Source: Anthoceros angustus (lineage: Eukaryota; Plantae; Anthocerotophyta). Taken from it: a stretch of 64,000 nucleotides of DNA. The notes below the pieces were generated by a model, which saw nothing but the letters and a program-made list of their open reading frames with translations, ran no database searches and was not told the DNA's origin. The translations under genes and the position numbers were made by a program. Below are positions 1 to 32,100 of this stretch, in pieces. The first letter of the stretch is position 1; each line of letters begins with the position of its first letter. The stretch covers positions 19,343 to 83,342 of the forward strand of contig VJWM01000313.1 in assembly GCA_010909165.1 (NCBI GenBank), given 5' to 3'.

Positions 1-1814
1 TCTAGCTCGTCCGTTAGTAGCCCGGTGGCGTGGATCTATCTACAAATCCATCTCCTGCCGCCCATCGCACGTTCTTGGCCGTTTGCATGCTCCTCCTCGA
101 CAATGATCTCTTCCATTCTGGTCTAGCCTCGTGTCTAGGTCCAGCTCGTGCTCCCATGGCGACCTCTTCGCCTTCACCTCCATGTCCTCCTCATGGTGAT
201 TTCCCATGAATCCATCTCCTTCTCCTGCGGTTTTCTTCAAACTTGTCATGGGATGCACCTCCTTCCTCTTGCCAACTCGTGGCCTCCACTTGCAGCCCTT
301 CTGCCTGCTCACCCTTGAGGAGCATTCCAGCCTCCTCCTCGCGCCCATGCTGGCGCCGTTTTATCTCCTCTCGGATTTCCAGATTGTCCTGCTGCAACTT
401 TTCCTGCACAACGCTCCCTTCTTGCTCATTTGGCCTCTCTGGCAACAAGACTTGCTGATCAATTCTTAGGCCGTCTACAACATGCTCACGTCCTCCCCCT
501 TCGACCCAGGCTGCGGCGACCAACTCCTCGTCAGGAAATCGGTCGTCTGTGGCCTCAAGTCGCTCCCGTTTTCAGACGAGAAATAAAATCAGCATTTTGA
601 TGCTGCTTCCCTGGCCTAGTTTCTACGTCGTAATCGAATTCTTGCAGCAGTAGTACCCATCTGGCAATCCTTCCTGACAAATCTGGCTTGTTGACAAGGT
701 ACTTCAACGCAAAATGGTCAACATGGAACGTCACTTTGCAAGCAAGCAGATAGTGTCTAAACTTCTTACAGGAGTAAATAATACCAAGACCCTCCGCTCC
801 GTGGTTGAGTAGTTCTTCTCAGCATCCGTGGGCTGTCTACGCATAGAAAATCGGATGATCCCGTTTCTTCTCGTCCTTCTGGCTTAAGACGGTCCCAATG
901 GCATAGGCGGACACATCCACGTATACGTGAAACGGTTTCTCCCAATCCGGCGGTTGTAACGTTGGTGCGCTCACTAAGCTGTCCTTCAGCTGCTGAAAAG
1001 CCTCCTGTCTTGCAGTTGTCCATTCGAAAGGTATATCCTTCTTGGTCAATTGTGTCAACAAGGCTGCCTTCTTAGCGAAATCCTTGATGAACCTCCTGTA
1101 ATATCCTACCAGTCCTACAAAAGCACGCACCTGTCTCACCGTTTGTGGCGTCCATCTCAGCTATAATTGCTACTTTCTCCTTATCCACCGCAACCCCCGT
1201 ACAGAGACCCGATGTGCTAACAAAATGCCCTCCGTCATACCAAAATAACACTTCCCCGGATGAAGTTTCATGTTCGACTCTGCATTTTGGAAACATTGTC
1301 TCAAATGATCTAAATCGGTCTCCTCCTTGAACAATCATCTAGGAATACCTCCATGAACTTCCTCGGAAAATCTCGGAATATCGCGTTCACTACCCTGAAA
1401 ATGGCGGGGCATTACACAACCCGAAGGGAGTTTTGAATAAGCGTAGGTTCCCCAATCCGTTGTGAATGTTGTCTTGTCACGATCTTCCTTCCAGCGAAAT
1501 TTGATTGTACCGAATATCCATCAAGATACATCTCATGTCAACTATGTCCACTGCTTGTCCATGAAAGGCAAAGGGTGATGATCCTTCTTCGCTCGTTGAG
1601 CTTCACGAAATCACAGCATACCGAACCTTTCCTGCTTCTTTGGTACAATCACGATGGTGCGACCCACTCTAGTGAGCACCGGGTAAATTACTCCGACCTC
1701 CAAATATTGGTCGCTGATCCTTAACGACCATGGAATACTTGGGGTTCAGTCTGTACTGCTTGATTCTCACCGGAGTGCTGCCCTCCTTCAAGTCGATTCG
1801 ATGTATCCTCAGTT
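1..1814 (-). mobile_element. Ty3/Gypsy pol fragment (copy A, left part): RT C-terminal half, RNase H and a charged post-RNase H linker
   Basis: ORF 837-1139(-) reads VRAFVGLVGYYRRFIKDFAK...FHVYVDVSAYAIGTVLSQ, and continues out of frame as KKFRHYLLACKVTFHVDHFALKYLVNKPDLSGRIARW. It is colinear with 30300-32100 and 54240-55960. It ends at 1814, where the TIR element begins. Confidence 0.93.
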
Positions 1815-1843
1815 AACATGATAATCTTGGAAGGGGGTTAATA
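1815..1843 (+). repeat. Left terminal inverted repeat of the MTase-carrying transposon
   Basis: Reverse complement of 10718-10745, apart from one substitution and one G-run length difference. Confidence 0.9.
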
Positions 1844-2439
1844 TACAAACCCCCTTCCGCACAACTGAAACCCCCTTCACAAAAAAGACACCGTTCGGGA
1901 AATGCAAAATCGTCGAATCCTCCGTCAACACCATGCTAAATACGAAAGGGAAAAAACATTGATATTTCACAATTCATAAAACAGGGCTTTCTTGGCGGCT
2001 GGCCGCTGCCAGTATCCTTGCGGCTATGCTTTGACACAAGTAATGAAAGAAAATCCGATATCAACTTTCAAAACCCTCTTCCGTCCCTCGAATATAGTCT
2101 TTCCTCTACAAAGATCCCTCAAAGTGATCACGAGACTCATCACGCTTGGGTGGCAATCTAAAACAAGCTGCCAGTTGCATGCGTTCAATTCTACTACATC
2201 GTCGGTCTCGGCCTTCGCTTCATCATCTTCGTTGTCGCCGTCCTTGTCGCCACCACTCCCGTCGCAGTATCCGAGGTTTGTTGTCCTTCCTCTAGCAAGT
2301 CCCCTTTGCGTTTTCATCCTCCTTGCACTAAGTGGAACCACGAGCTTTCGAACAATTTTTTTTTTAATACAAACTTCTTTAGCCGGTGTCGCTCCTCTCC
2401 GGTGGGCCTCGAATGTGAGCTCCTCTTTCCATCGCAAAA

Positions 2440-3050
2440 CCTCGAAACCATGTATGCGTTGTGGGATATAACCAGCATGAGGTCGGCCTCTATTGCAATA
2501 GAATTGCGTCGAAATCTTGCCGGTTGTTGTCCCACTTCCGCAACCATCCGTAATCCAATCTCCTTCTTTCGAGAATGTTTTGATGAATTTCATCATCAAC
2601 CCGAGAGGTCTTTGTAGGCACACCACCATTTTGTCTTGAGACATGTACACGCTTCTTCACCACGGATCATGTGCAATCACGGATCGTCCATTGTTAAAAG
2701 TCCCTCGTAATATTGGGCGCCTTCCGCCTTGCCTTCCTTCACACACCAAGCCACTGTTATGTACTCCACTGTCTCAAATCCACCCCTGTCATTACTCATG
2801 TTTGTTTTGTCCCAAAGCGAAGGACACCATTCCACCCTTGCCACATAATCCACGCATGCACTCTCTCACAAGGTGAGCTTCTTCCACTCCGTGCATGACA
2901 ATGAGCACAATTCTTCCGCCGTCGTCTTCTCCACAGCTTTGGAAGCTGTGTTCATCATGCGCATCGAACCGACTATCCATAGGACCAATGTCAAAGCCTC
3001 TTGGGACATCCATAAAGAAGGGTATAAGCCGCAGAAGGAATCCCGCATCT
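2440..3050 (-). pseudogene. Beta-class N4-cytosine/N6-adenine DNA methyltransferase-like domain (frameshifted as assembled)
   Basis: Motifs on the - strand in beta-class order: FFMDVPRGFD (motif IV position, 2996-3013); WDKTN...EYITVAW (2746-2814); QRPLGLMMKFIKTFSKEGDWITDGCGSGTT (motif X-I, 2525-2614); RNSIAIEAD (motif II, 2482-2508). An acidic tail (GDKDGDNEDDEAKAE) follows. Confidence 0.8.
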
Positions 3051-4139
3051 CCATAATGTTTCTTTTTCCACTTGATAGTAACACTCTTTCTCGGACCACG
3101 AGCGTGAACAAGTGCGGTCAGTCTTTCAAATCCTTGTCCGATTGCACGCTGCTCATCCTCAAGACTCTTCCAGTTGTTAATCTCAAATATGAAGTTCTTG
3201 AAATCCTCCGGCCTTTTGCAAATTCTCCACATCCTTTATTTCGACGCCGGAAAGAAAAACGTTAGAGCGAGGACACCACATTCCTATTGTATTCAAACAA
3301 GCGTTGGCGATGGCGAAGGAGGGTGTGAAAGCACGGCCGGCGCCCTTCACACCCTCCATCGACAAATTTGGTTTGCGGCTGCACCATGCCCGCGGCGGCC
3401 GGCCAGTAGAGCGGGCGAAGCCATACATGGGCGGCGGCGCCGTGACATGCGAACTGCGCATCCAAGATAGTGGGGGCGCGGCCGGCCGGCCTCCTCGCCA
3501 TTCTCCGGCGTGGCGAGGCGCGGCCGGCCAGCGGCGCCTCGCGCAAACGAAAACCAAAGCGACTCATTGTATGCGTGGTCGGATCTCACCTTCCCAAAAG
3601 CCGTTTGAAACCGAGCAATCATGTCGTCCGTTGAGTGTAGAGGATATTCCTTCCTCACTTCCTCGAAGATGAGCACTCGGATGTTTAGCCATGGCCACTT
3701 GAATAACATGCGGTTTCTTTCTTGAAGTAATTTCGTCCTCCATTCCTTTGAGATCGAGGATGCTCGATTACCTTCCCATTCTTGGTGACAAGAATCTGCA
3801 CATTCACCATCGTATACCGGAATGATTTCCGAGGTTTTAATGTCTTTCGGCTTGAAATACATTTTTCCACGTGTTTGGGATCATCTGTGACTTTCCTTTT
3901 CCCTTCCCTTTCTTCGGTGCCGGCGGTATGTGCTTCTTTCTGTAACTCGCTTCCCACTTTGAAAAGATCTTATCAATATTATCCCATACCTTGCCCTCCG
4001 CGATGCATGTGTGTGTCCTGTCCACTTTGTTACCTTGTACACGTCATCTTGGCCTTCATCATCTTCAATTAATCCAAGAACCTTATAAAGATTGAACTTC
4101 CATGACATGGTCATCTCACTCCATCCCGACGCCGAAGCT

Positions 4140-4400
4140 CATCTCGTAAATATCTTACATTCAATAAAAGACATTTTCTTCCGCTTATCGACATTGTGTT
4201 ATGGTCGGTTGCAAGAACTCTCATCTCGTGCACCGTAAGCCCACAGATACATGCGCTTCAACATATTGAAAGCAGGACTTCCGGAGCAATATCAAGTGCT
4301 TCATAGCGACATATGTGTGGTTCCCCAAGTACACCCATAATATATTTCTTGGCCCGAATTTAGCCAACTTGCTAATATCGTTGCACTCCCGGGTCAATCA
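4140..4400 (-). pseudogene. ParB/Sulfiredoxin-like domain upstream of, and probably fused to, the methyltransferase domain
   Basis: The - strand reads ILWVYLGNHTYVAMKHL (4293-4340; GNH motif in a helix-preceding position), then VSVGL...EMRVLATDHN...KMSFIE (4160-4245). This resembles the GL-x-E-x-LA-x-HN pattern of ParB-like domains. Same strand as the MTase motifs and about 1.1 kb 5' of them. Confidence 0.55.
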
Positions 4401-6898
4401 TGCATGAATGGCGAACCCTTCTTCAATCCTTCCCTTGAAATAACTCGGGCTAGGTAGTTTGACCATGCCTCGTCCACCCTCGATTTGGGCATCCGGTGTA
4501 ATAAAAGATCGGCTTCAAATTCTCAAGCTTTACCAAGTCTCTCGAACAACTTTCTTGGCATAGGCGAGTCCCCGATTATTGTCAATGGGTCCGATTCGGA
4601 TGGCATCTTCAAGTCTTTCCTCATCATCCGCATGGACGGTCGCTATATTCTCTGGTGGGCTTCACTCACGGTTTCCTTCCATTTCTTCTTTCTCTTCCCC
4701 GGTGGAGCCTCGCTATGTGTGGTATGCCCTGTGCGGCGTGCCCACCATGCCTTGCTCTCCACTCGAGTCCCTGTCTCCATACTCTCGGATCGGCGGACAC
4801 GGGAGGTGCCTCAATAGAAGCCGCGCACGCCGCCCACGCTCGGCCCGTCTCTTCCGCAACGCAAGTGCAAGGGCGTCGCAATCAGGCGGCCGGCGGCGCT
4901 TCAGTGCCTTGGGAACCCACCGGTTGGGGTGCAGTGTAGTCCAGACTCCCTCGGGAGGCGCCGGCGGCCGCCTCACCCTCTCCGACCGTACCTCCATGGA
5001 GGAGCCAGGAAAAGGAATGTCCAGAACGGAGCATCCTTCCATCCTCTCGCCTCGAAAGTCGTCATCGTCGGAGTGGCCAGGGCGTCGGGTATACACCCAT
5101 CCTCCTCATCGGATGGGCCGAGCTCACTAGGCACTGCGCTCGGCTTGGTGAGCCCGTCATGCACATTTCAGCCGGGCTCGACTCGTCGTTGTGACATTTC
5201 CCTCCTATCTTTGGATGACGGATTCGGTAATCTTCCGCATATTGTGTCGGTGCTCTAGCTTGAGCATCGCAAAACAAAAGGATTGAGGAAAGGCAAGATA
5301 GAAGGCACAAGTCATGGAAACCAACATATTTGCATCAAGCGCTTGAAAACCTTATTCCAAAGTTTTACTTATTGGGTGACGATAGCATTTCAATCCTCCA
5401 CCAGTTTGAAGGACTTCTTGCTTTGGAAGCCATGTAGGTGACCTCATAAGCCTTGTACATGGTTTCATCTTCGCTTATCCGATCAAATACCAAAGGCTTT
5501 GTTGTGCATCGAAAACAGCTCGTCCATCCATATCCACATCGCCCATAGAACCCGGCCCTTGCTCTGGTTTGGCAAGGCCCCTTGAACCCTCGACCCACGG
5601 TTTCAATAGAGGAGTCCAAAATTGTTCTCCTCAAGGCTCCTCATCCTGTGTCAACATCCGGTCCTTCTCGGCGAGCGCAGCCTCCACCTTGCTCCCCAAC
5701 CGACGTGTGGCATATCCTCATAGTTAAATGGCGTTGGAATAGGCCTGCATTGCTGTGGGGTCTCTTCCTCGGTCTCCTCCTGCCCTTCCCCGTTGTCTTG
5801 GCCTTCCCGGATGTTAGGATTTCCATGCCCAATTGACAAATTACCTCGGCTGGTGCTTGATGGCTGGGTTGTATCTGCGCCCTCCACCGAGGTAGGCGCG
5901 TGCCTTCTCCGACATCCACACAAATTCCCCGCATCCTTCTTCTTCTTCTGGGCCGGATTTCTTGGTTTTGGGCATCGGGTCGATGTTCTCTGGTTCTCCA
6001 CGTTCCTTCCCTCTTAGCTTGCCATCCTCAAGAGATTAGATACAATCGCCATAGGAAGCAATTCAAAGAAGGAATCGGTCCCAACAGGAAATTTGCGAGC
6101 GAAGGGGAGGGCCATCAGACTATGTGAATCGCGAGGAAATGGCGGAGGATCGCAGCGTGGAGAAGTCGCGTCTTTGGGAGACACGCCAAAAGTCCTTCTT
6201 GAGAGTTGATGTCGGGCCGCCACCGTCTCAGGCTGGAAGAACTTGCTCGGCTCTCTCGGGGTTACTCTCCACTTGAGCGAAAGTATGACGCCCCGTTGGT
6301 CACGTCACATGTCAACAACCTAACCATAAATGTCAATTAAGGAAATGCTTACATGGAAAACCATTTATAGGACCCTAAGTCAAAAGCCGTACATATGAAC
6401 CCCAATGCCGAGAAAACAATGAAGAGGCGGTGTGCCTCAGCCAAGTTCTACCGGTGAAGATCTTTCGGTTTATTTGCTCATAATGGCATTTCCACCTTAC
6501 CTTGATCCACTGCCTATGTCATGGCATACCACGCTCTGAAGAGTGAGGACCATATTTCCGGTTAGAGGTGCGAGTCCTCGGTGGCGACAATGTTGCGCCA
6601 CCCACATCGCTTGTCGAAGAGGTCGAGTTTTCGTCCACAAGTCATTCCTCACTTCGTTTGTGCGATCAAGGGGAACATGTACTTGAGAACAAGTGTTGGG
6701 TTTGCATCATCTCTCCGTCTGTTGATCCATGTAATGACATTGATGTTGTCGCGGAGCAGTGTGGAAGGGGTCTTTGATTTCCGGATGGTAGGTGACTCTC
6801 TTGTGAGGCCAAGGATGGTCAGATCTTGGGGGCCCCGATCATGAGCAACGAAACGAGTCCGAACTCCGGAAGGTTAGTTTGCCTTCAACGAAAGCGGC

Positions 6899-9800
6899 TT
6901 GTTTGCGGTGAAGACAATGTTGTGGCGAATAGTCCACCCCATCCGTGGCGATTCCATCTCATGCACACCGCACGGTATTGTAATGCTCGTCGCCATCGAC
7001 AAGCTCTCCGGCATTCCGCGTGGGGTGCCCATGACCCCCAGGAACTTGAACTTATATGCTGCCATTGATGGGAATCCTGCATCCAGGCGAAGACACCAGG
7101 AAGGAAGGGGAGATGGGGTGCAGAATTCCCGTCGTGGTTTGTTCCGCCAAGGAGCGATGTGCGAGGATGACCGCAGGACTGAGTTCTTCCCACAAGCAAA
7201 TGATCCGTGGACTGAGGATGGGGATGATGACTTTGTTCACCCTCCTCCGGCTGGTGCATCTGGAACATTCCATCCCAAGCCTTTAAGTGAGACATTGATG
7301 ACAACAAAGCTTTCTGGCGGACAAGCGCAGCGGCGACGGGCAGCGGGGGTGTCTTTGCAAAAATGTGAACTGGAGAAGGTGGCAGACTTTCTTAAACCGT
7401 GTTGCAACCAAATGTGCATGCAGAGGTTGACCAAGCAAGGCCTTGAGCAACGATATAGGTTCCTCACAATGCGAGGCAAGAGCAAGAGACATTTCTTCAA
7501 AGCCTCGTACATGGACCCGAGTCAAACTAACAAAGAAAGAGTTTTTCGCATGTTATGGGATCGGTTCCTCTGGTTGCGTGAAGGCCTTGAAGAGTATATT
7601 GTATAGCTGTGATACGAGGGAGGGTCATGAGGAATGCCCGTGGGATAGTGTTCGAACCAACCCAATTCATAAGTCCGTCATGCACTTGGTGCTCTAGCGT
7701 GGATGGATAATGCTCATTCATGGTGAAAGACTTCAACGTGCGGTGTATAACCGCACCTACAAAGCGGAGATATGGTCATTGTACAAAGCGGCGGTGTCAA
7801 AGCTCAGTGCGTTTGTGTGTCGCGGTTTTTGAAGTTATGGAAATCTAACTTCAGTGAAGATTCCCAAATCCAACAGTTCTCGACCGCTCAATATGTCTTG
7901 GGTTAAAGACCACCATTCGAATACAACTCAGGTTGATCAAGGTAGATATCACTACCACTAGTTGGAGTGGGAGGAGTTTTGGTATCATGGTTCGCTGGTG
8001 TGGCGGAGGGTGGGCGCCGGCCCGCGGCGCCACCCTCGGATATGACCGTTGCTGAAGTTGCACGAGTACCATGTTTGAAACTTGTCCTTGTTCATGGATG
8101 GCCCCCCGGTTGTAGGTTTGATTGGTCGAGTTTAGGGGCGGGCGGGCCCCGGCTGCGGCGCCACCCCATCCACCTTCAAACTCGCCAACCATAATATATG
8201 ACCTAGAAGGTGGACGTTTTGTAGATTTTAGATTGGGGAAGATGGTAAATGTATGTGTGAAGAGGTGATAGTCCACGACATCGGTTTGTTGTATGCAATG
8301 GGTTTCATGGATTACATCTTCGCTTGTGGTGTGGAAGAAGCGTGTTTGTATGTGTGAAATTGGGGAACGTGAAAAACTTGGAAGGATGTGACACTTGGAG
8401 CGTGTTTGGCGTGGCGGAAAAATATCGGGCGCGTTAGAGGCACAGCGTGCAGGAGGAGCGGGAAAAATGGCAAAACACCGTGAAAAGAGTTACGACCGGA
8501 TAAGTACATGCTCCTCGCTATAGACTCGGAATGGACCGAAGACCGAGATTCCACACTTTCGTTGGCCAAAGAATCTTGATGAGGACTGCCGTGTATCTGC
8601 ACGTAGTGGGTTGCATGATCCACAATTATACGCAGCAAGAGTGTTTTTGCACTATGCCAATTTGAGGAACGATGAATCGACAATCGATTATTCAAGATGT
8701 TATTCTTAATTATAAAGGAGTGCTACCCAAAGTGCTCTATTTGCAGCTTGACAACACTTGCCGGAAAACAAGAACCATGTTGTTTGCGTGTTTGAACATG
8801 CTAGTTGATATGGGAACTTTTCAAGGTGAAGGTTGGGTTCCTCCTTGTTGGGCACACTCACGACCAAATCGACCAAATGTTCTCTTGCTTTTCCAAAAGC
8901 TTGAAGCACAAGGCACACACTCTTCCCGCGTTGGCGACATCGTTCATGCATACACGCCTACCGAGATCAAAGTTTTGCGGAGGTCCGGACTTCCGGTCAT
9001 ATGTATGGCCGATTAGACAAGGCGATGGTCGCGGGCATATTCATCGGCGGTGAGAAAATTGAACAACTTATCTTTCCAGCACTTTAAAATCACCAGAGAA
9101 GACAAACCGAATGGTATGGTGATGATTAGGCAAGCAATATTCGACATCGATGTATTGGGAAACCGGCCGGGTTGGAGTTTTTGAAATTTGTCCCTCCGAC
9201 ATAACCGATGCGGTGTCGGCCCTCCGGCTCGAGACAAGAAAGGGACGTCGGCGGTTATCTCCGACGGAGTGGCACATTTGAGAGCGGGTCAGCCGGGCTG
9301 CCATATGTGACCGGACAGAATATGGATGGTGGGAAGCATTCAGGTGGACCAAGAAGAAATCGCAATAATCGTGGAGAACAACATTGGGCTCGCACTAGAA
9401 GTGCCGTGGAAATGGTTCTCTCTAATCGGAAGAAAGCAACCACTCCAAGTTCCTGAAGCTATCCTAGAGGCGTTGCTAAGAGAACTCCCCAGGATATGTA
9501 CTTAGGGCCTTACCGGCTTGGAAGGCAGCGGCGAAATGGCACGTTGCATGGAGATGTAAAAGACATAAAGGAAGGATGTTCATCGCAGTACCTTGTACGA
9601 TACGCATAATCGGCCTTTCCGGATTGGGAAAGTTAATCGGTGAGGTTGGATGTGGAAGAGCCTCATTTCCGTTCAAATGGGCGAAACACGATGCATATGA
9701 AGGCGAACGTGGAAGAATATGTGATTCGGACCCTTCCACCGAGACAATTTGGATTGGAAGGAAAAGGGTGGGAAGGCAAATTTCAAGAATGTTCAAGAAG

Positions 9801-9950
9801 TCTTCATCAATAAAACCGTCATCTTGTATTATGGGTTCGGTTTGAATTCCGTAAACATCTCTATTCCATTGACAAAAAGCGATCGAGGATAAGTTGAATG
9901 AATTGCGGGGCTTCATCGAGCCACCAAAGTGCACCGGAAGATAGTGACGA
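6899..9950 (+). pseudogene. Sola-like (DUF7869-type, RNase H-fold) transposase, frameshifted as assembled
   Basis: Ordered motifs: KPCCNQMCMQRL (7394-7429); GCVKA (7572-7586); FLKLWKSNF..VKIPKSN...SICLGLK (7830-7908); KHREKS..DKYMLLAID.GMD..TEIPHF (8474-8555); LPKVLYLQLDNTC (8723-8761); VGFLLVGHTHDQIDQMFS (8832-8885). A C-terminal GMFIAV...RPF(W)IGKV...VILYYGF...LTK segment follows (9570-9880). Confidence 0.82.
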
Positions 9951-10717
9951 AGGCGGTGAGGACATCGGGCCCTTGGACATGGAAGGTGTCAATTCGGAGA
10001 TGAGTGAAAAGATGTGAAGTGGAGGCAAACATCGGTGGACATCGGTGACAAGAGGGTTTACTCTCGTCAGTGTCTTGACCGCCAAGTGTTAGGCTCAAAG
10101 TGGGAGCTCGCGTTAGTGATAGGGAATCACTGGTGCTATCATTCGGTGGAAGTTGAAGAAGTTGAGTCACTTCCGGCCGTAGGTTGCGATGTCGGCGACA
10201 AGGACAAATGGCGGCGCGGTGGGCGGCGCCACGCCATCCTTTAGTAGCATGGAAACCGCTTTTCCGCACCGATCCCGTATTGTACATTTTGTTCGCACAT
10301 ATATAACCCATCCGGCATGCCTAAATCCTAAATCGTGGAAACCCGATAGCTGGGCGCCGGCCCGGCGCCACCTTCTTGCCAAAACAAAAGACTATGGGTT
10401 CGGGGACGGTTCGGAAAGAAGCACCATTCTTTACCAATGATGTGAAGATTGGCAATGTCTTCAAAAGACCTTGTTTATTTAGGCGGCCTCAACAACCCGT
10501 TCCCTTTTAGTCCTTAGGGTACTTATGGTAAGCAAGCATGGGTCGTAATATGCCAAATTCGATGGCGAACTCGCTAACCCTTTGTGTGATGGAACCGCTC
10601 GGACGTCAATTTCATCCCTTATCGACCCTTATTTTCAGGCCTTTCGACCGATGTTGCAAAGCGTAATCGACCCATCCCAAACCCCTTCCGGCGATATTTG
10701 GTTGAAAACCCCTTACG

Positions 10718-10745
10718 TATTAACCCCTTCCAAGATTAGCATGTT
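10718..10745 (-). repeat. Right terminal inverted repeat of the MTase-carrying transposon
   Basis: TATTAACCCCTTCCAAGATTAGCATGTT, followed directly by resumed Gypsy RT sequence. Confidence 0.9.
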
Positions 10746-11260
10746 GGTTCTTCAGGTATTCTGTCATCTATCGGTAATTTTGAAGGCACACATCGACATA
10801 TTCCCTAAACTACTAAACTCTTCTTTCTCTACGCCTAGATACCTGAAACCTTGACTGCCTTACCATGCTCTAACTCTAAATCCTCTACGACATACGGGAT
10901 CTCGTATATCGCCGGTACTACTGTCTTGGTCCCGGATCCCTCCTCGGGAAAATCCACGATCATAAGCTTACCTCTTCCAAAAGGCTACTCGCTCTCTATG
11001 TGCCTGTCTTGACTCTCCCTCGACATCCTCACGTTGCAAGCATGAATACTCCAAATCAACTTTTATTTGACAGCCTCGGTGAAGGTCCCGATAAGCTCGG
11101 TCGAGTGCAGGAGCTTACCTCAGAGTGCTACGGTGTAACCATCAGTGGAGTGCAGAACTCCCCTCATAGGGAGCCTTGCTCCATGACACAAAGCGATTAC
11201 CGCAGTCCTACCTATTAGACTTGAAGGTGACGCCCGCTACGATAAAATCAAAGAACACAT
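10746..11260 (-). mobile_element. Ty3/Gypsy copy A, middle part (protease-RT spacer and RT N-terminus)
   Basis: Nucleotide-colinear with 32060-32560, e.g. GGAGCCTTGCTCCATGACACAAAGCGAT occurs in both. It is bounded by the TIR element on the left and the solo LTR on the right. Confidence 0.85.
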
Positions 11261-18600: not shown

Positions 18601-21600
18601 ATTTGGTGTTGAATGATATTGATATTTTTAGAAATTAAAATTATTTAATCTTTAGGGCTAGAAGTAGTTTAATTGATTACTTAATTGGTTATTTGGTTAC
18701 AACAACCTATAACCTACTTCACAAATATTATATACTTTCTATTATTATAATCAATGCATAAGATCCTTTGAGCAAGTCCTTGATTCTCTTCATGGTTTTG
18801 AGCACAGGCGATTTTTGTACTAGTGTAGAGGATACATCCTCTGTATCATCAATGACACATATTGCAAGATGCCAAAACCTAGGACTTTGGCCGCGGTCCA
18901 CGCTAATGTGTGTGATATGAGGAGGATGTCAATAACACCACCGCCATTTGGACTCATCTACTCGGGTACGAGAGGCAAAGCTTAGCAATTTCCCTCATGC
19001 CTTTGCCACTCATGCTCACTATCCAATCAGCGGAATGTAGCGTCGAGAGATCACGCTTCACTCACAACTCACTCGGTGTGGTAAGAGCTTCTAGATCCTT
19101 TTCAAAGCGGAGATGACTAGACAAGCAAGATACTGTGAACTTATGGAGCTTTCCTCGTGCTTGTCCGTCAGTCAGTCTGAGATGCCAAAAGTTGCTACTA
19201 TCGAGAGATGTTGCTGTTGATCGTGTTTAGGGTGTGGTAGGAAAACCAGGGCACTCGAGACTCTCCCACTATAATGACCACACTTATCCCACTTTGTCAC
19301 TTGTCGTTGGGTTTCGTCCCATGAGACTTGTGTGAAAGTTCGAGGCCTTGTGCGATGCCGTCGCTACTGCGAGAGACACACTTCTCAGCCTTCTAAAGCA
19401 AGGCGCCCTCTACTCACCCCCGGTGCCCTGCACCGAAAAATCACCAATCCTCGACCTACAGCGACACAACACAATTGCGAGGTCACGCCTTAGCGAGGAG
19501 CCTATCACGGGCGCCAGGGACCCCCAGTCCACACCGATTTCGTCCCTACTTCTAAGACCACTCTTCTCCACTCGGGGCGCTCTTTTACTTGATTTGGGAT
19601 TCGTCCCTTAGGCTCACATGGCCTTCCACTAACACCTACACCTCTAATCCTCTACTCATCTCCTCATCCTCTTCCTCCTATTCTAACCTCGATTCGGGCT
19701 TCTTGGGACTAGCCCTTGCAGCTGGCACAGGGTCGGCCTCCACCGGCAAGTTCTTCCTTGGGCGGTTGCTATGAGTTTGACACGGCGAGAACCTCCGAGT
19801 CTTTCCTGTAGTCTACCCTCAAGCCGAGAGTTCACAGGCATTGCCACACACCCAAAGCAAAGCAATTTCACAGCAACCATTCACAAGGGGGCAACTCGTT
19901 TAGGCACTTGCGGAGCAAGTCCTCCACCAAGCACTCAGACCACCGCGACTTCCTCTCTACGACTGCGTTGGCTCACGGCCGAAATTCCTCTGTAATGGCA
20001 AAGGACTCGATGGGGTGGGCGCAAGGCGTGATACTTTACTTTGTGAAATCCTCCTCCTCTTATAGGAGGCCTTCCACATACAACCTCCCTTGGTGACCCT
20101 CTGCGGTCACCTTTTCCAATTTTCTATTATTTCCTACACTTGACATTTAAGGCTGGCATCTAAATCTCGTTGGTAAATTCTATTCTAGCAACTTCACCTA
20201 GATCATCCTTTAAAGGATGTCGACTTACATCACTGTCCTTTCTATTCTTCTATCTAGCATTTATGGTCTTTGACCATATCTAGTCTTCACCTTTTGGGGC
20301 GGGCCGTCCGTTGTGGATTGGCTCCCTCGCCCTCCTTTTTGCTCTTGCCCTTCCCGGCTTGTCATCTTCCTAATGTGTGGGGCAAGTACAATCTTGCCCT
20401 TCCTCCATCTCGTAGCGGCCATTCCTCCATCATCCAGCAATCGCCCCCTCCGCTCGGGCGCCTTTTCTCCAGCCTCGCTGGTGGCGCCTCATCATCGGCA
20501 CCCTACCGCGGTAGTCGGACTACGGGGTGACTTCTACCATGGTAGTCGATCTTCCCTTCTTCTCCATCGGCGATGCCTCTGTTGGATCTTCTTGCTCCTT
20601 CCTCTTGTTTGGTTTGTCCATACCTATCATGGAGCATCTTCAAGTCTTCCCCTCAATGTCGGATTTCCACTAATCCTTGGGCCTTTTTGCATCCTCTCCT
20701 CACAGCTGGCCTTCCCTTGCTCGTGGGGTGAGACTTCTCACCTCCTTCTCTCTTGGTGGGATCCGTCAGTCTCCTCAGGTGGGTTGTCTCTCCCCCCACC
20801 TCCTCTGCGGGGGTGTCACTACCCCGGCTCCTTCCTTCCTCGGCCCCAGCGGCGACTCCCCAGCCAGCCGCCTTCCACCGGTGGTCGGCGGACTACGTGG
20901 GGTGGTATCTACCCCGGTAGTCAGCGGACTACCGTGGTGGGATCCTCCGTGGTGGTGACCCCCAGGTGGGCTGTCCCCCCTCCTTGCTCTCCCGCCACCC
21001 TTCGCTTGGCGCTCCTCCTTCCTCCAGTTCCTCGGAGTCCATGTCACTTGTGGCCTCATCAAATCGAGGCCTTCCGGCTGCACTGCTGACTCCTTCATCA
21101 TCATCATGAGGACCCAATGTCCTCCTCTTGGCCAAGCAAGATCTCATTGGCCTTCAAAATCTATTGTGAGGTGAGCCCCAAGCTATGATATTGCATTTGG
21201 AGATCATCAATCTCCAGGCCATCTCCATCTCACACCTACCCTTGTAGGATCTCTTGTGGTCAATTCTCCCACCTTGACATGGAGGTTACATTCTCCTCCC
21301 TTGCTTCTTGGTGGCTGGCCAATTTTGCTGAAGGGCATAATGCCAAAATCTCCTCTTCCTCACCACATCACATGTACCACCTTTCTTGTGGTACTCCTCC
21401 TCTTGGAACCTCCTTTGTTCCCTTACCATTGTTAAAGTCTCTCCTTCTCACTTGCCCTCTTCCCTCGCTCTAGCTCTCTTGTACTGCTGATCTTGAGCCT
21501 TTAGCTCAGCGCTTCTCTTCAAATTGAGCGGTCTTCGCAATTCTTCTTGTCCGGATCTTGATGGCTTGTAGCCATCACTGCTCTTGCGTCCATTCTTTGG

Positions 21601-21936: not shown

Positions 21937-24900
21937 TGTAAGGTATTAAAGCCCAAGACTAATACACTTAGTCTAAGTTAGGTGTCGATTAAGTATCATT
22001 AGTTTAGCTTAAGCTAATCACTAGGAAGCTTCTTGTGCTCCTTCCTAGGAGCTTCTTGTGGAGCTTCTAGGAGCTATTGGAGGTATAAATACCTCCAAGC
22101 CTCATCTCAATGTGAGAGCTACTCTTGCCTCCTCCTCTCCTCTCCTCTTTCCACCATGGCGCCACCATCCTTCAACCGGTATCGAGCCATGGTTTGGTTG
22201 TGTTGTGATGCTAGAATTTTCTAGTGCAGGCGGTGACTCGTGGAATTGCGTGATCCAGATCGCGGTGGGTGACGCGCGGCGAGCGTGGCGGGCGGGCCGT
22301 GGCGCGACGCGAGCGAGCGGCAGGCGCGTGGCCGTCGGGCCTTGGCGCGAGCGCGCGCAGCCGGCCGCGGGGCGGCGCGCGGGCGCGGCGCGGCGGAGCG
22401 CGGGCGCGGCGCGGCTGGCAGCGGGGCGTGCGGGCGCGGCGCCCGCGCCGCCAGAGGCCGCAGCCCAGGCGCGGCGCCCGCGCGCGCCCGCGAGCCCTGA
22501 GCCCGCGCCCGCGCGCTGGCGCGCGGCGCCGGCCCAGCGGCCGAGGCGCCGGCCGCGGGCGCGGCCGAGCGCCCCGCAGGGCCCATGGCCGGCGCCGGCC
22601 AGCGGCTGAGCCCGCGGCGCCGCCCGCAGCGCGGCGCGCAGCCGCGGCGCTGCAGGCGCGGCGCTGGCCACCCGCGCAAGCGGGCGGCCAGCGCGCGCCG
22701 GCCGCGAGGTGCGCGTGGCGGTGGTGGCCGCGGCGGGCCGTCGGCGGCGCGGTGGCGCGCGGCGTGCGCGGCGGTGGCGTGCAGCAGCGGGCGCGAGGCA
22801 GTGCAGCGCGGGGCGGTGAGCGGTGTCGAAAATTTATTCGGCGGAATACTCAGGTGGAATAGTCAACGGCAAAATACACGGACCGCACGGTGACTGTTTT
22901 CTTCTTTGACTTTTCTGACAAGGCGAGTCGAGTGTTTTATCTGTATCGATTTTTGAGTCATGATGTCTTCATCATCAGAAAACGTCATGTTCAATATCGA
23001 GAAGTTAGATGGTACTAACTTCCCGTTCTGGAAAGAACAAGTGTATAATGTTCTAGTGCAGAAAAAGCAGATCAAGCCCATAAAGTTGTTAGGCGTCAAA
23101 CCAGATAGTATGACACAGGATGAGTGGCAGGACCTGGATGAGCTTGCTAGATCTACTATCATGCTAACATGGTTAAAAACGGTGTAGTTCAATGTGAAAG
23201 ATAAGACCACAAGTTACGGTGTGGCGGTATGTGACTGTGAGAAGCAAAGTGCGGCTTCTCGGTGTATTGGTTGAAACAGCTGGTGGACTTGAAGATGAAG
23301 GAAGGGACGAGGATGTCCGATCATCGAATGATTTCAATACCATTTTCAGCCACTCTCATCTCAAGGTATCACGTTCCCGTTAGTGAGAGCTATGTTTATT
23401 GGTCACATTACGGGAGTTGGGACACCTTCGTAAACTCGAGTAATTACACTTTGCTAGTGGTCTTACCATTGTAAATGTAGAAGGTAGCACGTGGCGAGGA
23501 GGTGAGCATGGAACATGGTTCCGGTGCCCTCATAGGAGGGAGGTCCAGCGGACAGCTTTCTCTGCAAATCTAGTCGTAACAAGAATGTGGAGTGTCACTA
23601 TTGTCACAAAGGGTCACTTCAAAGAGAGTGCGAGAAGTTCAAAAGGACCAAGGAAAAGAGAAGCGGGGACAAGGCGACTTAAATGCATCGAGTTGGAAGA
23701 GTTAAACTACGTTGAGGACGGAGATGTCCTTATCTCTTCTTACTTGAATCTTTGCACAATTAACGGCCGTGGATAGTCATTTATTACGCAATTGGATAAT
23801 TGACTCGGTGCATCTTTCCATGTTACTCCGCGAGAGTGGTTTAACACGTATGATGCTACAAGGAAAGGATGCGTTAGGCTTGGAAATAACTATGCATGCG
23901 GATCGCGTGGGTGATGTGCAACTCAAGTTTGACAACGGATCTTCATTCATCTGAAGGGCGTTAGGCATGTTCGAAGTTGACAAGAGCATGATTAGCGCGG
24001 GGCGGTTGGATGATCTTTGGTTACCACCTTGGTTTGGGGATCACTCTTGGAAGATCTCCAAAGGTTCTCTTGTGTTAGCTCGTGGATCGAAGTGTGGCAC
24101 TTTGTACTCACTTGAGTAAACATCAAAGATCATGTGATCGTGAGCAAATGTTTCCTTGTGGCATTGCGGTTAGGACATATGTCTCGAGAAGGGAATGAAG
24201 GTTTTATCTCGTTACGGTTATATCCTGTTAACTTCTCGATCTCTCGATGTGTGAGCACTGTTTATATGGGAAGCAGACAAAATCATCACATCGAACAAAG
24301 GTAAAAGTAGGGTAAACCTCTTGAGTTGGTTCACGTGATGTATGTGGACCTATGCTCACAGCATCATTAGGCGGTGCCTCTTATTTTGTCACTTTCATAG
24401 ATGATTTCTCACGCAAGGTGTGGGTTTATCCTTTGAGGAAAAAGGATGAAGTTCGGCGGTGTTTGAAATTTGTCACCCTTGTAGAGAATCGGTCGCCACC
24501 GATTGAAGTGTCTAAGGGGAGATAATGGTGGAGTATGTTTGAAAGCTTTCCGGTCATTCGTGATTCCAAGGAATCGAGAATTATGCGTATCTCCTCCACA
24601 AAATGGTGTGGTGGCGGATGAAACCCATTCGGAGAGGATGCGTAGTTTGTTGTCAAACTCGGATTGCCTAATGGGTTTTGGGCGACGGTGTCTCTGCAGT
24701 TCATCTTATTAACATCTCCTAATAAAATTTGATGAGTTCGAGCTATGGAAAGAAACCATCCTACAAGCATCTGCGAGTGTTTGGGTACATGAGGCATCAT
24801 GTTCCAAAAGAGTTTCGGGACAAGTTGGCACCTAAGTCCAAGAAATGTATTTTTCTTGGCTATGGTGATTCGGTGAGATGGGATACGTTTGTGGGATCCG

Positions 24901-26873
24901 AGGCTAGAAAGGTTGTTATTTCGACGTGTTCTTCAATGAGAACAAGATGCAAGCCTACTCCAAGCGTGGAGGTGCGAAGGGTGATCTTCCAAGAAGATGG
25001 ACATGATCATCATGGCGGTTGATAGCATGGTAATGTGTGAGCACATTCCTCCGATAGATGAACCAAGAGTCGAACAAGCACCTATAGGTGCATGCTTCGT
25101 GGGTCGAGATTACACGACCTCACGGGTATGATCCATCTCGGATTATGTTATCGGATTGTGGGGAACCCTCTTCTTACAAAGAGGCTCATGTCGGTAACAA
25201 AGAGAAGTGGGAGAAGGCCATCGAAATGAATTGCATAAGAACCAAACTTGGGAGTTGGTTGTTGCCTAAGGATAAGAAGGCACTACCTGCAAATGGGTGT
25301 ACAAGATGAAGGTCATACCGATGGCAAACCAAAGTACAAGTTGGTTGCTAAGGGTTTCAAGCAACAACCGCATTGACTTTGATGAGATTTTCTCACCGTA
25401 GTCAAAATGACAACTTTGCGATGTGTTCTTGCTTTGGTTGCGAGGATGATATGGAACTTATGCGGATGGATGTCAAGGGCATTCTTGCATGGTGACCTTC
25501 AAGAGGACGTCTACATGCAACGAAGGTTTTGTTGAGAAGGGCAAAGAATCGGTGTGCGAGTTGAGGAAGAGCCTTTATGGTTTGAAGCAGGCGAGTGGTA
25601 TCACAAGTTCCACTCATTTATGCTTTCTCAAGGCTACAAGCGTAGCGATGAGGATCATTGCCTCTATCTGAAGCAAGCTAAGGATCAAAGCTTGCTCATT
25701 TTGATCCTCTATGTGGATGATATGCTAATTCGCGATCTTGATGATTTGTTGAAGTCAAAGTTGAATGCTCACTTTGAAATAAGACTTGGGAGGCGAGCCA
25801 TATACTTGGCATGCGTATTCGGAGCAGACATAAGCGTCACTTTATTTGTCTCGACGGAATACGTGCTTCAACGTTTCAACATGGAGAAGGGAAGCCATTG
25901 GGTACTCCATTGCCTCCATATGTGAAACTTTCAAGCGCGGATTGCCCAAGCTACGAGGAGGACAAAGTGAAATGGAGAAGGTCCCATACTCATCGGTGTA
26001 GGGAGTTTGATGTATGCAATGATTGCTACGTCCGACATTGCCTTTGCGGTGGGAGTGGTTAGCGGTTTATGTCAAACGGCAAGAAGCATTGGGAGGCGAT
26101 AAAAGGAGTTATGAGGTATCGAATGGTACAAAAGCTTTGTGCATATGTTTTGGTAGTGAAGATGCATGTGGTTGGGTACGAGATCGATTATCACGGATAT
26201 GGACAAAGGTCCACATCAGTTATGTCTTCATTGCTTGGAGGCGATCTCATGGCGATCTCGTTTGCGATCGTGCATTCGCTATCTACCAGGCCGAGTATGT
26301 TGCAAGCGAGGCTTGCAAGGAAGCCATATGGCTTTCGTTTAGTGGAGACTTGGGGATCAAGGTTGGGTGTTGCATTGTGATAGCAGTGCTATCAATTGGC
26401 AAAGAATCCGATGTTTCATGCGAAGACTAAACATGTGGATGTGAAGTATCACTTCATTCGAGAGGTGTTGGATGACGAGGGTACAACTTGTCAAGGTTCA
26501 CACCGGCGAACCTGCGATATTCTTACCAAGGGACTCTCTACGACAATTTGCACAAGCTCGGACGATGGGCATGAGATAGTCCATTCTCCTGAAGGTAAAT
26601 TGGCCTTTAAGTGGGAGGTTGTAAGGGTATTAAAGCCCAATGTACTTAGACTAATACACTTAGTCTAAGTTAGGTGTCGATTAAGTATCATTAGTTTAGC
26701 TTAAGCTAATCACTAGGAAGCTTCTTGTGCTCCTTCCTAGCTTCTTGTGGAGCTTCCTAGGGAGCCTATTGGAGGTATAAATACCCTCCAAGCCTCATCT
26801 CAATGTGAGAGCTACTCTTGCCTCCTCCTCTCCTCTCCTCTTTCCCACCATGGCTGCCCACGATCCTGCTTCA
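21937..26873 (+). mobile_element. Full-length Ty1/Copia retrotransposon (Tnt1/Tork-like), 4.9 kb, frameshifted as assembled
   Basis: LTRs at 21937-22174 and 26620-about 26873. PBS CGGTATCGAGCC (iMet-like) at 22177-22188; PPT AAGTGGGAG at 26609-26617. Protein motifs: gag KLDGTNFPFWKEQ; integrase YFVTFIDDFSRKVWVY; RT KKSLYGLKQA and LYVDDMLI; RNH AKNPMFHAKTKHVDVKYHFIRE. Left TSD GTGCT at 21932-21936, right copy partly visible as TGCT; the empty site is at about 39768-39785. Confidence 0.93.
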
Positions 26874-30300: not shown

Positions 30301-30849
30301 TCCTCACCTCCGTCCGTTAGTAGCTCCGGATGGCGTGGATCCATCTCCCATCGCCTCTTGCTTCCATGCACATTCCTCGCTGCGGCCCGTTTCTCCTCCT
30401 AACAGCTGATTTCTTCCATTCTGCTGGTCTAGCCTCGTCTAGGTCCAGCTCGTGCTTCCATGGCGACCTCTTCCTTTTGCCTCCATGGTCCTCTTGGAGT
30501 GATTTCCCTGAATCATACCTCCTTCTCTGCAATTTTCAAACTTGTCATGGGATGCATCTCCTTCCTCGCCCTCTGGCGCACCACCTCCTAGGGCCTTCTC
30601 CTCCTCGCGGCCCATGGCGCTGCGCCAAGTGGGGCCTTCCGTCGCTCAGCGGTGCTCTCATGTCTTGCCTCCTTGCCAACGTGGCCTCCACTTGCAGCCC
30701 TCCGCTCACCCTTGATTCAGCCTCCTCCTTGCGCCCATGCTGGCGCCATCCTATCTCGGTTCCAGTTCTGCTGCGGCTTTTCTCACAACGCTCCCTTCTT
30801 GCTCATTTGGCCTCTGCGGCAACAAGACTTGCTGATTCTTAGGCCGTCT

Positions 30850-32100
30850 ACAACATGCTCGTCCTCCCCTTGACCCGGGTGGCGACCAACTCCTCGTCGA
30901 AATCGATCATCGTGGCCTCAAGTCGCTCTCCGGTTTTGAGAAATCAATTCGATGTTGCTTCCACCTAGTCTACGTCGTAGTCAAACTCTTGCAGCGGTAG
31001 TACCCATCGGCAATCCTTCACGACAAATCGGCTTGTTGACAAGATACTTCACGCAAAATGGTCAACATGAAGCGTCACCTTGCAAGCAAGCGATAGTGTC
31101 TAAACTTCTTACGAGTAAATGATACCAAGACCTCTCCGCTCCGTGGTTGAGTAGTTCTTTTCGGTCGTGACATCTACATAGAAAATCGGATGATCCGTTT
31201 CTTCTCGTCCTTAAAGCGGTCCCAATGGCATAGCGGACACATCCGTATACATGAAGCTCCGGTCTGGCGGTAAAGTTGGTGCGCTCAAGCTGTCCTTCTG
31301 AAAAGCCTCTGTCTTGCATTGGTCCATTCGAAGGTGTATCCTTCTTGGTCAATTGTGTCAACAAGGCTGCCTTCTTGGCGAAATCCTTGATGAACCTCTG
31401 TAATATCCTACCCACACAAAAGCCTTTTGCCTCACCGTTTGTGGTGCGTCCATCTCATATGCTACCTTCTCCTTATCTACCAATCCTCGTCTGACTCGAT
31501 GTGCTAACAAAATGCCCTCCGTCATGCCAAAATAACACTTCCCGGATGAAGTTTCATGTTCGACTCTGCATTTGAAACATTGCCTCAAATGGTCTAGATG
31601 CGTTCTCCTCCAAACACGAAATCATCGGAATACCTCCATGAACTTCCTCGGAAAATCTCGGAATATCGCGTTCACCACTGGAAAGTGGCGGGGCATTACA
31701 CAACCGAAGGGCTTGAATAGCGTAAGTTCCCCAATCCGTTGTGAGCGTTGTCTTGTCGATCCTCCTCCTTGCAGTTGATTGTACCGATATCCGAAACACA
31801 TCTCCAGCTCATGTCCACACCTGTCCATGAAAGGTAAAGGTGATGATCCTTCTTCGTTGCTTCATTGAGCTTCACGAAATCTTGACACGAACCTTTCCTG
31901 CTTCTTTGGTACAATCACGATGTGCGACCCACTCGTGAGCGGATAAATCACCCGCCTCCAAATATTGGTCGGTGATCCTTAACAACCATGGAATACTTGG
32001 GATTCGATGTATTGCTTGATCCTCATGTCTTGCCCTCCTTCAATCGATTCGATGTATCCCAGTTCTTCCGGTATTCCTGTCATGTCGGTAATCTTGAAGG
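30850..32100 (-). pseudogene. Gypsy B reverse transcriptase and RNase H
   Basis: KTTLTTDWGTYA; FIKDFAKKAALLTQLTKKD. Colinear with copies A and C. Confidence 0.85.

Follow-up and report, generated by a model that had tools for sequence, protein, structure and literature searches.

The stretch of DNA analyzed here (hereafter, the window) comprises 64,000 nucleotides (nt) of the Anthoceros angustus genome (GenBank assembly GCA_010909165.1, contig VJWM01000313.1, positions 19,343 to 83,342 of the forward strand). At 1815-10745, it contains a segment bounded by terminal inverted repeats (TIRs) that is very probably a decayed member of a transposon family in which a transposase is paired with a divergently transcribed partner gene encoding a ParB-like domain and a DNA methyltransferase (MTase). 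The left TIR (1815-1843, plus strand, 29 nt; AACATGATAATCTTGGAAGGGGGTTAATA) and the right TIR (10718-10745, minus strand, 28 nt), an inverted copy of the left one, are 1 mismatch and one 1-nt insertion or deletion apart. The 22-nt core of these repeats occurs at two places only in the 64 kb, namely the two TIRs, with 0.01 matches expected. No further copy or internal repeat of the element is found within the window, and an exact scan of metagenome and viral contigs for the TIR returned 0 matches.

The insertion can be reconstructed from the flanks. The left flank (268-1814) aligns to 30672-32064 in the same window, a paralogous copy of a long terminal repeat (LTR) retrotransposon, and the right flank (10747-11259) aligns to 32062-32543 of the same paralog, the whole paralogous stretch spanning 30672-32543. 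The two alignments are contiguous on the paralog and overlap at 32062-32064. The paralog reads ..TATCCCAGTTCTTCCGG.. (junction CCCAGTTCTTCC), with CAGTT followed directly by CTTCC at the empty site (32061-32064), and in the window the element is preceded by ..CCTCAGTT, with the left end CTCAGTT, and followed by GGTTCTTCAGG... Comparison with this empty site identifies the left copy of the target site duplication (TSD) as AGTT (1811-1814) and the right copy as GGTT (10746-10749), with GTT in common, so that the TSD is either 3 bp long and perfect (GTT) or 4 bp long with 3 of 4 positions identical and one change (AGTT/GGTT). The 28/29-bp TIRs and the short TSD reported in a first-pass annotation, which was made from the sequence alone, are thus borne out, and so is its argument against contamination: a mis-join or a contaminant is unlikely because the flanks rejoin on a paralogous retrotransposon in a retroelement context, where the paralogous copy has Ty3-type reverse transcriptase and RNase H domains and other parts of the window contain copia gag and integrase. 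An Rfam scan of the window gave no match. The segment 1815-10745 is best explained as a TIR DNA transposon with two genes that entered an LTR retrotransposon long ago and has since been inactivated.

The plus-strand gene is represented by transposase remnants at 7367-9050, which are spread over at least three frames and include a DUF7869-type RNase-H-like core (LDNT..., GFLLVGHTHDQIDQMFS). Pfam DUF7869 (PF25273) matches at 8805-9050 (E 9e-14) and at 8666-9013 (E 2.7e-6), and the scores of these pieces, 51.9 and 27.6 bits, are above the gathering score of 26 bits. Because the two matches fall in two different frames, the gene is frameshifted; it is fragmentary and broken. A hidden Markov model (HMM) of the transposase family described below recovers four window pieces that correspond to positions 81-124, 342-390, 395-442 and 443-491 of the 866 positions in the profile. 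A search of PDB sequences with the transposase detected no relative.

The minus-strand gene is far more difficult to recognize. When ~20 open reading frame (ORF) pieces of this strand were scanned with Pfam, NCBIfam and PHROGs, and three of them compared with PDB sequences, the sole responding region was 2522-2632(-), and it responded weakly. This region lies within the C-terminal half of an MTase domain (2437-2632, minus strand) that contains a QRP..L helix, the motif I sequence GSGTT and the string RNSIAIEAD, in the manner of the beta-class N6/N4 MTases, and is split by a 1-nt frameshift directly after GSGTTTG. The motif-I piece matches PF01555 with an E-value of 0.033 and 14.6 bits, below the cut-off of 26.7 bits, and a PHROG methyltransferase family with an E-value of 8e-4; a tblastn search against phages retrieved 429 records, and among the 25 listed, nearly all are annotated as DNA methylase. 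An HMM built from six phage MTases has a single match among the 2485 fragments of the six-frame set of the window, and this match is the motif-I piece, with a score of 24.1 bits that rises to 33.8 bits when the frameshift is read through with X. The gain comes from RNSIAIEAD, beyond the frameshift, which corresponds to the conserved string (R)xFIGIE(x)D of the phage enzymes, and the extension can be considered independent support because the phage sequences were not selected on it. In frameshift-aware alignments, the C-terminal part of the MTase scores 80-91, vs 25 +/- 4 for control DNA; the N-terminal 165 residues of the six phage MTases, aligned to 2650-3400(-), score no better than control DNA.

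Considered in isolation, the window points, weakly, to a fragment of a beta-class MTase around motif I, and the detectable portion of ~60 residues is what would be expected if a single copy of the transposon had once picked up a piece of a bacterial or phage MTase gene. The same one-off capture seems to be favored by a search of 1.8 billion representative sequences with the 210-amino acid ORF at 2027-2656(-), which found nothing real, only a spurious repeat protein; this blank says little because ~165 of the 210 query residues are out of frame. Two upstream pieces that, as shown below, align with the family gene, are similarly silent in general searches: the ParB-like piece has no match in Pfam, PHROGs, PDB sequences or phages (tblastn), and the motif-IV piece retrieves nothing relevant from phages by tblastn.

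The identity of the minus-strand gene becomes apparent from related loci. The 82-amino acid DUF7869 core retrieved ten short proteins, and their alignment retrieved 80 metagenome loci, many of them with intact genes. These loci were scanned with the phage-MTase HMM and, in a second round, with HMMs derived from their own sequences. Intact relatives encode a DUF7869 transposase of 820-900 amino acids (174-182 bits, E ~1e-52), and in 17 of the 80 loci (L007, L008, L013, L016, L023, L025, L026, L031, L035, L036, L037, L041, L042, L044, L064, L068 and L071) a divergent partner gene is located 0.5-1.6 kb upstream of the transposase gene. The same multi-exon gene is found beside the transposase in several lineages, at ~55% identity, which argues against one-off capture. 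Two of these loci, L007 and L008, in which the phage HMM was blank, were initially taken to be cargo-free; this assignment was rejected when the family HMM identified the ParB exon in both. They combine a GC content of 35%, Ty3 and copia debris, the ParB exon and the transposase; the GC content of the window is ~50%, and at the DNA level the window is far from L007, L008 and the fern-like loci.

Several of these loci show the element ends. L064 is a 7.6 kb element (98-7691) with both genes inside 37-nt TIRs that are 97% complementary (98-134 and 7655-7691), and L035 likewise has both genes inside TIRs, at 177 and 6220. In addition, L044 retains the left TIR, and L066, L069, L074 and L080 retain the right TIR downstream of the transposase. 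The TIRs of the family and of the window align (the left window TIR with those of L064, L035 and L044), with AACA[CT]G as their common first nucleotides and GAA..GG(T)AATAT as a common subterminal string. The layout of L064 and L035, together with the DUF7869 match in the window, bears out the earlier description of a DUF7869-type transposase and a divergent minus-strand gene inside the TIRs. The complete elements contain two genes only, and Pfam scans of their ORFs reveal no nuclease family and hence no restriction-modification partner. In another locus (L027:1-6430), a flipped copy, with its MTase-side TIR ending at 4040, abuts the 5'-truncated transposase of another copy, in what looks like a nested insertion of the transposon family into itself.

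With the family HMMs and alignments available, the remnants on the minus strand of the window fall into place. The HMM of the motif-I exon matches 2027-2656(-) with 27.3 bits (E 2e-7). A remnant of the motif-IV exon can be discerned at 2840-3058 (minus strand), where YGDAGFLLRLIP..FFMDVPRGF...LIVMHGVEEAHLVRECMRGLC corresponds to GDV..LPKKEYTLMIADIPYGF...IVIFHSMDQGYSVAQALRSRC in the family, with LIVMHGVEEAHLVRECMRGLC aligned to IVIFHSMDQGYSVAQALRSRC; the window sequence has DVPR in place of DIPY, with the aromatic residue lost, and lacks ~6 residues upstream. The local alignment to this exon of L044, L023 and L031 scores 37-40, a value that is reached by 4-9 of 300 shuffles (shuffle p ~0.01-0.03). 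DVPRGF (~3010) precedes GSGTT (~2540) on the minus strand, so that motif IV comes before motif I, with the same spacing as in the relatives. Further upstream, at 3945-4346 (minus strand), there are remnants of the ParB-like region and the helical region that follows it (NILWVYLGNHTYVAMKHL, CGLTVHEMRVLATDHNT, VDKRKKMSFIECKIF and AEGKVWDNIDKIFSKWEAS), in several frames interrupted by stops. The HMM of the first exon matches 3840-4043(-) (E 0.0014), where AEGKVWDNIDKIFSKWEAS is aligned with the profile string rdGevWdlqdkifsmWeek, 4114-4257(-) and 4142-4198(-); these three matches are collinear and rank 1, 2 and 4 among the 2485 fragments. Collinearity is also seen in tblastx comparisons of the window with L023, L031 and L044, at 4242-4198, 3998-3951, 3673-3548 and 2656-2546 of the minus strand. 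Since the ParB, motif-IV and motif-I matches occur in the right order, the window appears to carry a whole but decayed copy of the partner gene, with both genes dead, which is not what one-off capture of an MTase fragment would leave behind. The remaining stretch (4347-7366), presumably the N-terminal part of the partner gene and the divergent intergenic region, yields no profile match and contains GC-rich patches.

Such patches, at 3265-3600, 4650-5100 and 7860-8230, interrupt both element genes. They contain runs that code for GRP/AAG/RRP-like strings in all frames, and their mutual similarity is confined to short imperfect inverted matches; they may be small insertions or products of local expansion.

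The association between the two genes is ancient and maintained. For the eight loci in which both genes are intact (28 pairs), the amino acid identities of the transposase and of the first exon of the partner, which range from 99% down to 52-58%, correlate with r = 0.98, a value inflated by the relatedness of the copies; for the nonsynonymous substitution rate (dN), r = 0.97. The synonymous rate (dS) is saturated in most pairs, in which dN amounts to 0.1-0.45. The pairs with a measurable dS give dN/dS ratios of 0.07-0.12 (transposase), 0.08-0.11 (exon 1) and 0.03-0.22 (motif-IV exon), and of 0.02 for the motif-I exon in the L023/L031 pair; values of ~1 are observed only between near-identical copies. 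As judged from these substitution patterns, both genes are under purifying selection and have long been inherited together. Co-occurrence of MTase and transposase with dN/dS below 1 had been proposed as a check in the first-pass annotation, and the 17 loci with the pair and the ratio of ~0.1 agree with it. Seven other loci (L058, L059, L061-L063, L078 and L086) show no trace of a partner in 3.4-9 kb of upstream sequence, as one would expect under one-off capture. They represent a more divergent, decayed JGI clade of DUF7869 transposases, and because the partner is missing from that much upstream sequence, the cargo is either clade-specific or was lost in this clade. Co-divergence and purifying selection are incompatible with capture, whether one-off or repeated, and the presence of the intact pair inside TIRs adds to the refutation of a single capture, which we regard as hardly credible.

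The partner is a multi-exon protein of ~900-1000 amino acids that appears to consist of a beta-rich N-terminal domain, a ParB/Noc-like domain and a beta-class N6-adenine/N4-cytosine MTase. The first exon encodes 520-580 amino acids; it is followed by the motif-IV exon, with GD...LPKKxY(S/T)LxIADIPYGF, the motif-I exon, with NPY[QK]KPQRL...DW(V/I)(L/M)DLFSGTG and an intron in a conserved position directly after FSGTG, and the last exon, with (G)TT...FRN(A/C)(V/I)(A/S)LEKDE and an acidic tail. The ADIPYGF exon thus precedes DLFSGTG/TT, which is the permuted beta-class order, IV before I. PF01555 is detected above its cut-off in L044 (42.1 bits), L064 (38.1 bits) and the Ginkgo protein Gb_10123 (P0039; 68.9 bits). 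Accordingly, the beta-class motifs that the first-pass annotation read in the window are confirmed for the family, and the window sequence itself stays below the threshold. Among PDB sequences, the MTase domain of the Ginkgo protein is closest to CcrM (E 1.5e-7), M.MboIIA, M.RsrI and DpnA, with a weaker match (E 2e-3) to the cytosine-N4 enzyme 8s9m, presumably that of a bdelloid rotifer. The same domain matches 3396 plasmid records, and a protein search with it returned only the Ginkgo paralogs. Whether the product is N6-methyladenine (6mA) or N4-methylcytosine (4mC) is not readable from the sequence because the beta-class domain has switched between the two specificities repeatedly (PMC8885841).

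The ParB-like part is apparent mostly at the level of predicted structure. In the AlphaFold2 model of a first-exon product (P0012; alignment of 18 sequences), residues 50-160 and 235-549 are ordered, with a predicted local distance difference test score (pLDDT) of 77-94 in the ordered part. The top 46 Foldseek matches of this model in the PDB are all ParB, Noc, KorB, Spo0J, PadC or sulfiredoxin; the best one is Myxococcus xanthus ParB (7bnk; E 7e-6, probability 1.0), and the alignment of ~290 columns covers the ParB N-domain and the following helical domain. Together with a weak but recurrent match to DUF6551 (E ~0.03, in four partner proteins), the predicted fold of this relative suggests that the partner carries a ParB/Srx-like domain. 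The ParB-like part noted in the first-pass annotation is, then, recovered in the fold of a relative and missed by the Pfam ParBc profile. The N-terminal domain (P0012:48-160) is modeled with pLDDT 94 as five strands and two helices and has no significant match among PDB folds, the best E-value being 0.11; a role in reading or targeting, as a domain of a new type, is conceivable.

Motif IV bears on the question whether the partner is an enzyme at all. DIPY is a variant of DPPY that departs from the canonical DPPY/SPPY, most of the Pfam match falls in the C-terminal half of the domain, and only the ParB exon is seen in the available sequence of L007 and L008; all this would fit a DNA-binding regulator or a partition-like pseudo-enzyme in which the ParB module is the functional part. 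However, IADIPYGF is invariant in 9 of the 9 sequences compared and NPY[QK]KPQRL...DLFSGT in 7 of 7, so that IADIPYGF, NPY[QK]KPQ and FSG[TS]G are invariant or nearly so under strong purifying selection, and the phage MTases most similar to the window piece carry DLPY or DMPY at this position, although these are enzymes by annotation. A pseudo-enzyme accordingly seems unlikely. An active methyltransferase is the preferred assignment for the family; the window copy, with DVPR, lacks an intact PF01555 catalytic tetrapeptide.

Relatives in named plants provide some indication of the host range. A search with the first exon of L023 retrieved 31 proteins, most of them from ENA ERZ1034xxx assemblies, and Ceratopteris richardii KP509_1Z236600 is 56% identical to it. 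In Ginkgo, the gene models Gb_10123 and Gb_03516 (EukProt) contain PF01555, and two further paralogs were found later. A Ceratopteris locus (L091; MU262555.1, 39100-61388) contains the ParB and motif-IV exons and a frameshifted motif-I exon; it may be a copy that stands alone, is non-autonomous or is in decay. The Ceratopteris and Ginkgo relatives and the debris of Ty3/copia-type retrotransposons indirectly support the interpretation of the family as a land-plant element, the intact members of which appear to reside in fern-like contigs.

The same genes invite the opposite reading, namely that the partner is a host or domesticated gene that merely happens to lie near transposases, the Ceratopteris and Ginkgo genes being the original form. 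Indeed, there is no transposase within 10 kb of the Ceratopteris gene, four or more gene models are annotated in Ginkgo, and the conserved introns imply a long eukaryotic history. Against this stand the location of both genes inside the TIRs of L064 and L035, the many high-coverage divergent copies per metagenome that co-diverge with the transposase, and the copy nested inside the transposase of another copy in L027; furthermore, the Ceratopteris MTase exon is frameshifted and looks like part of a decaying copy. An origin as a bystander host gene is therefore quite improbable, and we continue to treat the partner as cargo of the transposon.

A feature that might connect the two genes is found in the region between them. 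Ten loci (L013, L023, L025, L026, L031, L037, L041, L044, L064 and L071) contain arrays in which 1-15 palindromes follow the pattern CGAT[GA]C-N2-6-G[CT]ATCG, with conserved arms GGAAGT/ACTTCC (e.g., GGAAGTCGATGCCCCGCATCGACTTCC; also written GGAAGTCGATGC-N3-5-GCATCGACTTCC). In these ten loci, the arrays are confined to the region between the divergent genes (e.g., L031:4512-4709, L037:2526-3290 and L025:2555-3040), and the palindromes are kept across lineages with ~55% protein identity. In Ceratopteris, palindromes are found between exons instead (L091:11796-12042).

Several negative results have to be set against the inclusion of the window element in a family of transposons with a ParB-MTase partner, or against parts of this interpretation. 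The motif-IV remnant, a weak part of the window evidence, is not detected by any profile, be it from Pfam, the phage MTases or the family. The Pfam ParBc profile matches neither the window pieces nor the relatives, and a search of PDB sequences with the family profile found no ParB. No TSD is apparent at the flanks of L064 and L035, which come from metagenome assemblies of multi-copy DNA, where flanks may be chimeric. The seven loci with long upstream sequence and no partner also belong here, and so does Ceratopteris L091, with no transposase within 10 kb on either side, which indicates that the gene also stands alone. Finally, palindromes of the family type are absent from the window (4347-7366 included), L007 and L008, so that self-targeting via such sites may not be general. 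The assignment stated at the outset takes these results into account.

The gene content of the family suggests a scheme for its mode of action. The transposase would act on the AACA[CT]G termini and move the element in cut-and-paste fashion, and the ParB-like module would bind DNA, probably that of the element itself, with the palindrome arrays between the two genes as the candidate sites in the fern-like lineages. The MTase would then write 6mA or 4mC there, and this marking would tune the bidirectional promoter and transposase access or counter host silencing by 5-methylcytosine (5mC). There is functional analogy, but not more, with known cases: for IS10/Tn10 and IS50/Tn5, expression of the transposase or use of the ends depends on Dam methylation of the element, but the methylase is that of the host, and VANC of the VANDAL elements is an element-encoded accessory protein that acts on its own element, but removes methylation rather than writing it. 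This specific mechanism, ParB docking on element DNA combined with methylation that controls promoter, access or silencing, can only be proposed tentatively, with the odds somewhat against it. The window copy is incapable of it, given its two broken genes and the DVPR in place of motif IV. The central proposal of the first-pass annotation, a TIR element with its own amino-methyltransferase, is thereby upheld at the level of the family, not for the window copy, and the roles it suggested, namely marking of the ends, evasion of silencing and spread of 4mC/6mA writers, are speculation.

The MTase could, alternatively, act genome-wide or on host targets, by blocking 5mC maintenance of the host or as a germline or sperm 4mC writer similar to MpDN4MT1 of Marchantia. 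Eukaryotic N4-cytosine writers of the PF01555 family do exist, and the N-terminal domain, for which the predicted model finds no solved counterpart, could serve to read chromatin. Local targeting is suggested instead by the ParB-like module and the palindromes inside the element, and an action on host targets seems rather unlikely, if somewhat less so than a pseudo-enzyme.

A search of the open-access literature found no description of a ParB-MTase/DUF7869 transposon, and searches for DUF7869 itself and for the ERZ accession numbers found nothing. The novelty suggested by the first-pass annotation holds to this extent and has to be qualified by a close precedent in red algae. There, a cassette on Plavaka elements includes PAG2, a combination of PF01555 and SET, and PAG3, a ParB-like domain (best hit 7BNR) combined with a 2-oxoglutarate (2OG) oxygenase; Zisupton, Mutator and Fanzor elements carry this cassette as well, and self-binding and self-modification have been proposed (bioRxiv 10.1101/2025.02.11.637652). 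Asparagopsis has 66 PF01555 genes. In both cases, a eukaryotic DNA transposon carries PF01555 and a ParB-like module, with inverted-repeat arrays by the ParB gene. In the present family, however, ParB and MTase are parts of one protein, whereas the red-algal cassette splits them, and neither SET nor 2OG is detected by Pfam in the partner proteins, which makes it a different cassette. The transposons differ as well, being DUF7869-type elements of 6-9 kb in fern- or gymnosperm-like hosts in one case and Plavaka/CACTA elements of 17-19 kb in red algae in the other. The domain repertoires can be considered analogous, a likeness in domain content.

Fusions of N-terminal ParB domains to methylases are common in prokaryotes, on plasmids and in phages. 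The present partner resembles the prokaryotic beta-class MTases (CcrM, M.RsrI, M.MboIIA and DpnA) in the order IV-I, the QKP..L helix, FxGSGTT and (I/V)G(I/V)E; unlike these, it is multi-exon, has an extra N-terminal domain, an acidic tail and DIPY, lacks a restriction partner and is located on a TIR transposon. Other eukaryotic PF01555 proteins, bdelloid N4CMT (PMC8885841) and Marchantia MpDN4MT1a/b (bioRxiv 10.1101/2021.02.12.428880), are derived from prokaryotes and are either joined to eukaryotic chromatin functions or employed together with them. These are host genes, and N4CMT contains a chromodomain rather than ParB, in contrast to the transposon cargo described here. Giant-virus mariners carry an MTase beside the transposase as well, but of other classes (Methyltransf_26, C5) and with an endonuclease partner (PMC3627910); they are restriction-modification-like and lack the ParB that is present in this family. 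With respect to the transposase, Pfam contained no domain for Sola (4-bp TSD), Zator (3-bp TSD) or comparable superfamilies as of 2017. The window element shares with Sola and Zator the TIRs, a short TSD and a large RNase-H-like transposase; its TSD (GTT or AGTT/GGTT) is unlike the 4-bp AWWT reported for Sola2; a length of 3 bp would fit Zator and one of 4 bp Sola.

The rest of the window contains further repeats. Long direct repeats at 19500-21300 and 36260-38030, ~16.75 kb apart and with segments 80-100% identical, and a tandem duplicate of 1.13 kb at 37854-39153 probably represent another retroelement, either its LTRs or copies nested in one another. A 93-nt repeat (21956-22048 and 26648-26740, 100% identical, 4.7 kb apart), adjoined by a 1-kb stretch of 70% GC (22001-23000), may represent the two ends of an element that inserted recently. 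At 45180-46270, 46760-47900 and 52000-52860, there are three related segments of copia type (gag, pre-integrase, integrase), two of them 1.6 kb apart in a tandem-like register.

In plants, DNA 6mA and 4mC are contested, and the writers are mostly unknown. The family described here provides a beta-class amino-methyltransferase that has long been kept under selection as the fixed partner of a transposase, together with proteins and loci to assay, and shows that methylases and ParB on transposons, as found in red algae, also occur in land plants, and with another type of transposon. A broader scenario is considerably more speculative and, on balance, improbable: ferns, Ginkgo and the host of the window would harbor transposons, recently active in some of them, that write 6mA or 4mC on their own DNA via ParB docked on palindromes, and solo or domesticated copies would be the source of land-plant amino-methyltransferases, possibly including sperm-type 4mC writers. 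The observations nevertheless suggest a general strategy whereby mobile elements bring their own epigenetic writer, and they point to a source of 'bacterial' MTase genes in plant genomes other than contamination or a direct horizontal transfer that yields host genes.

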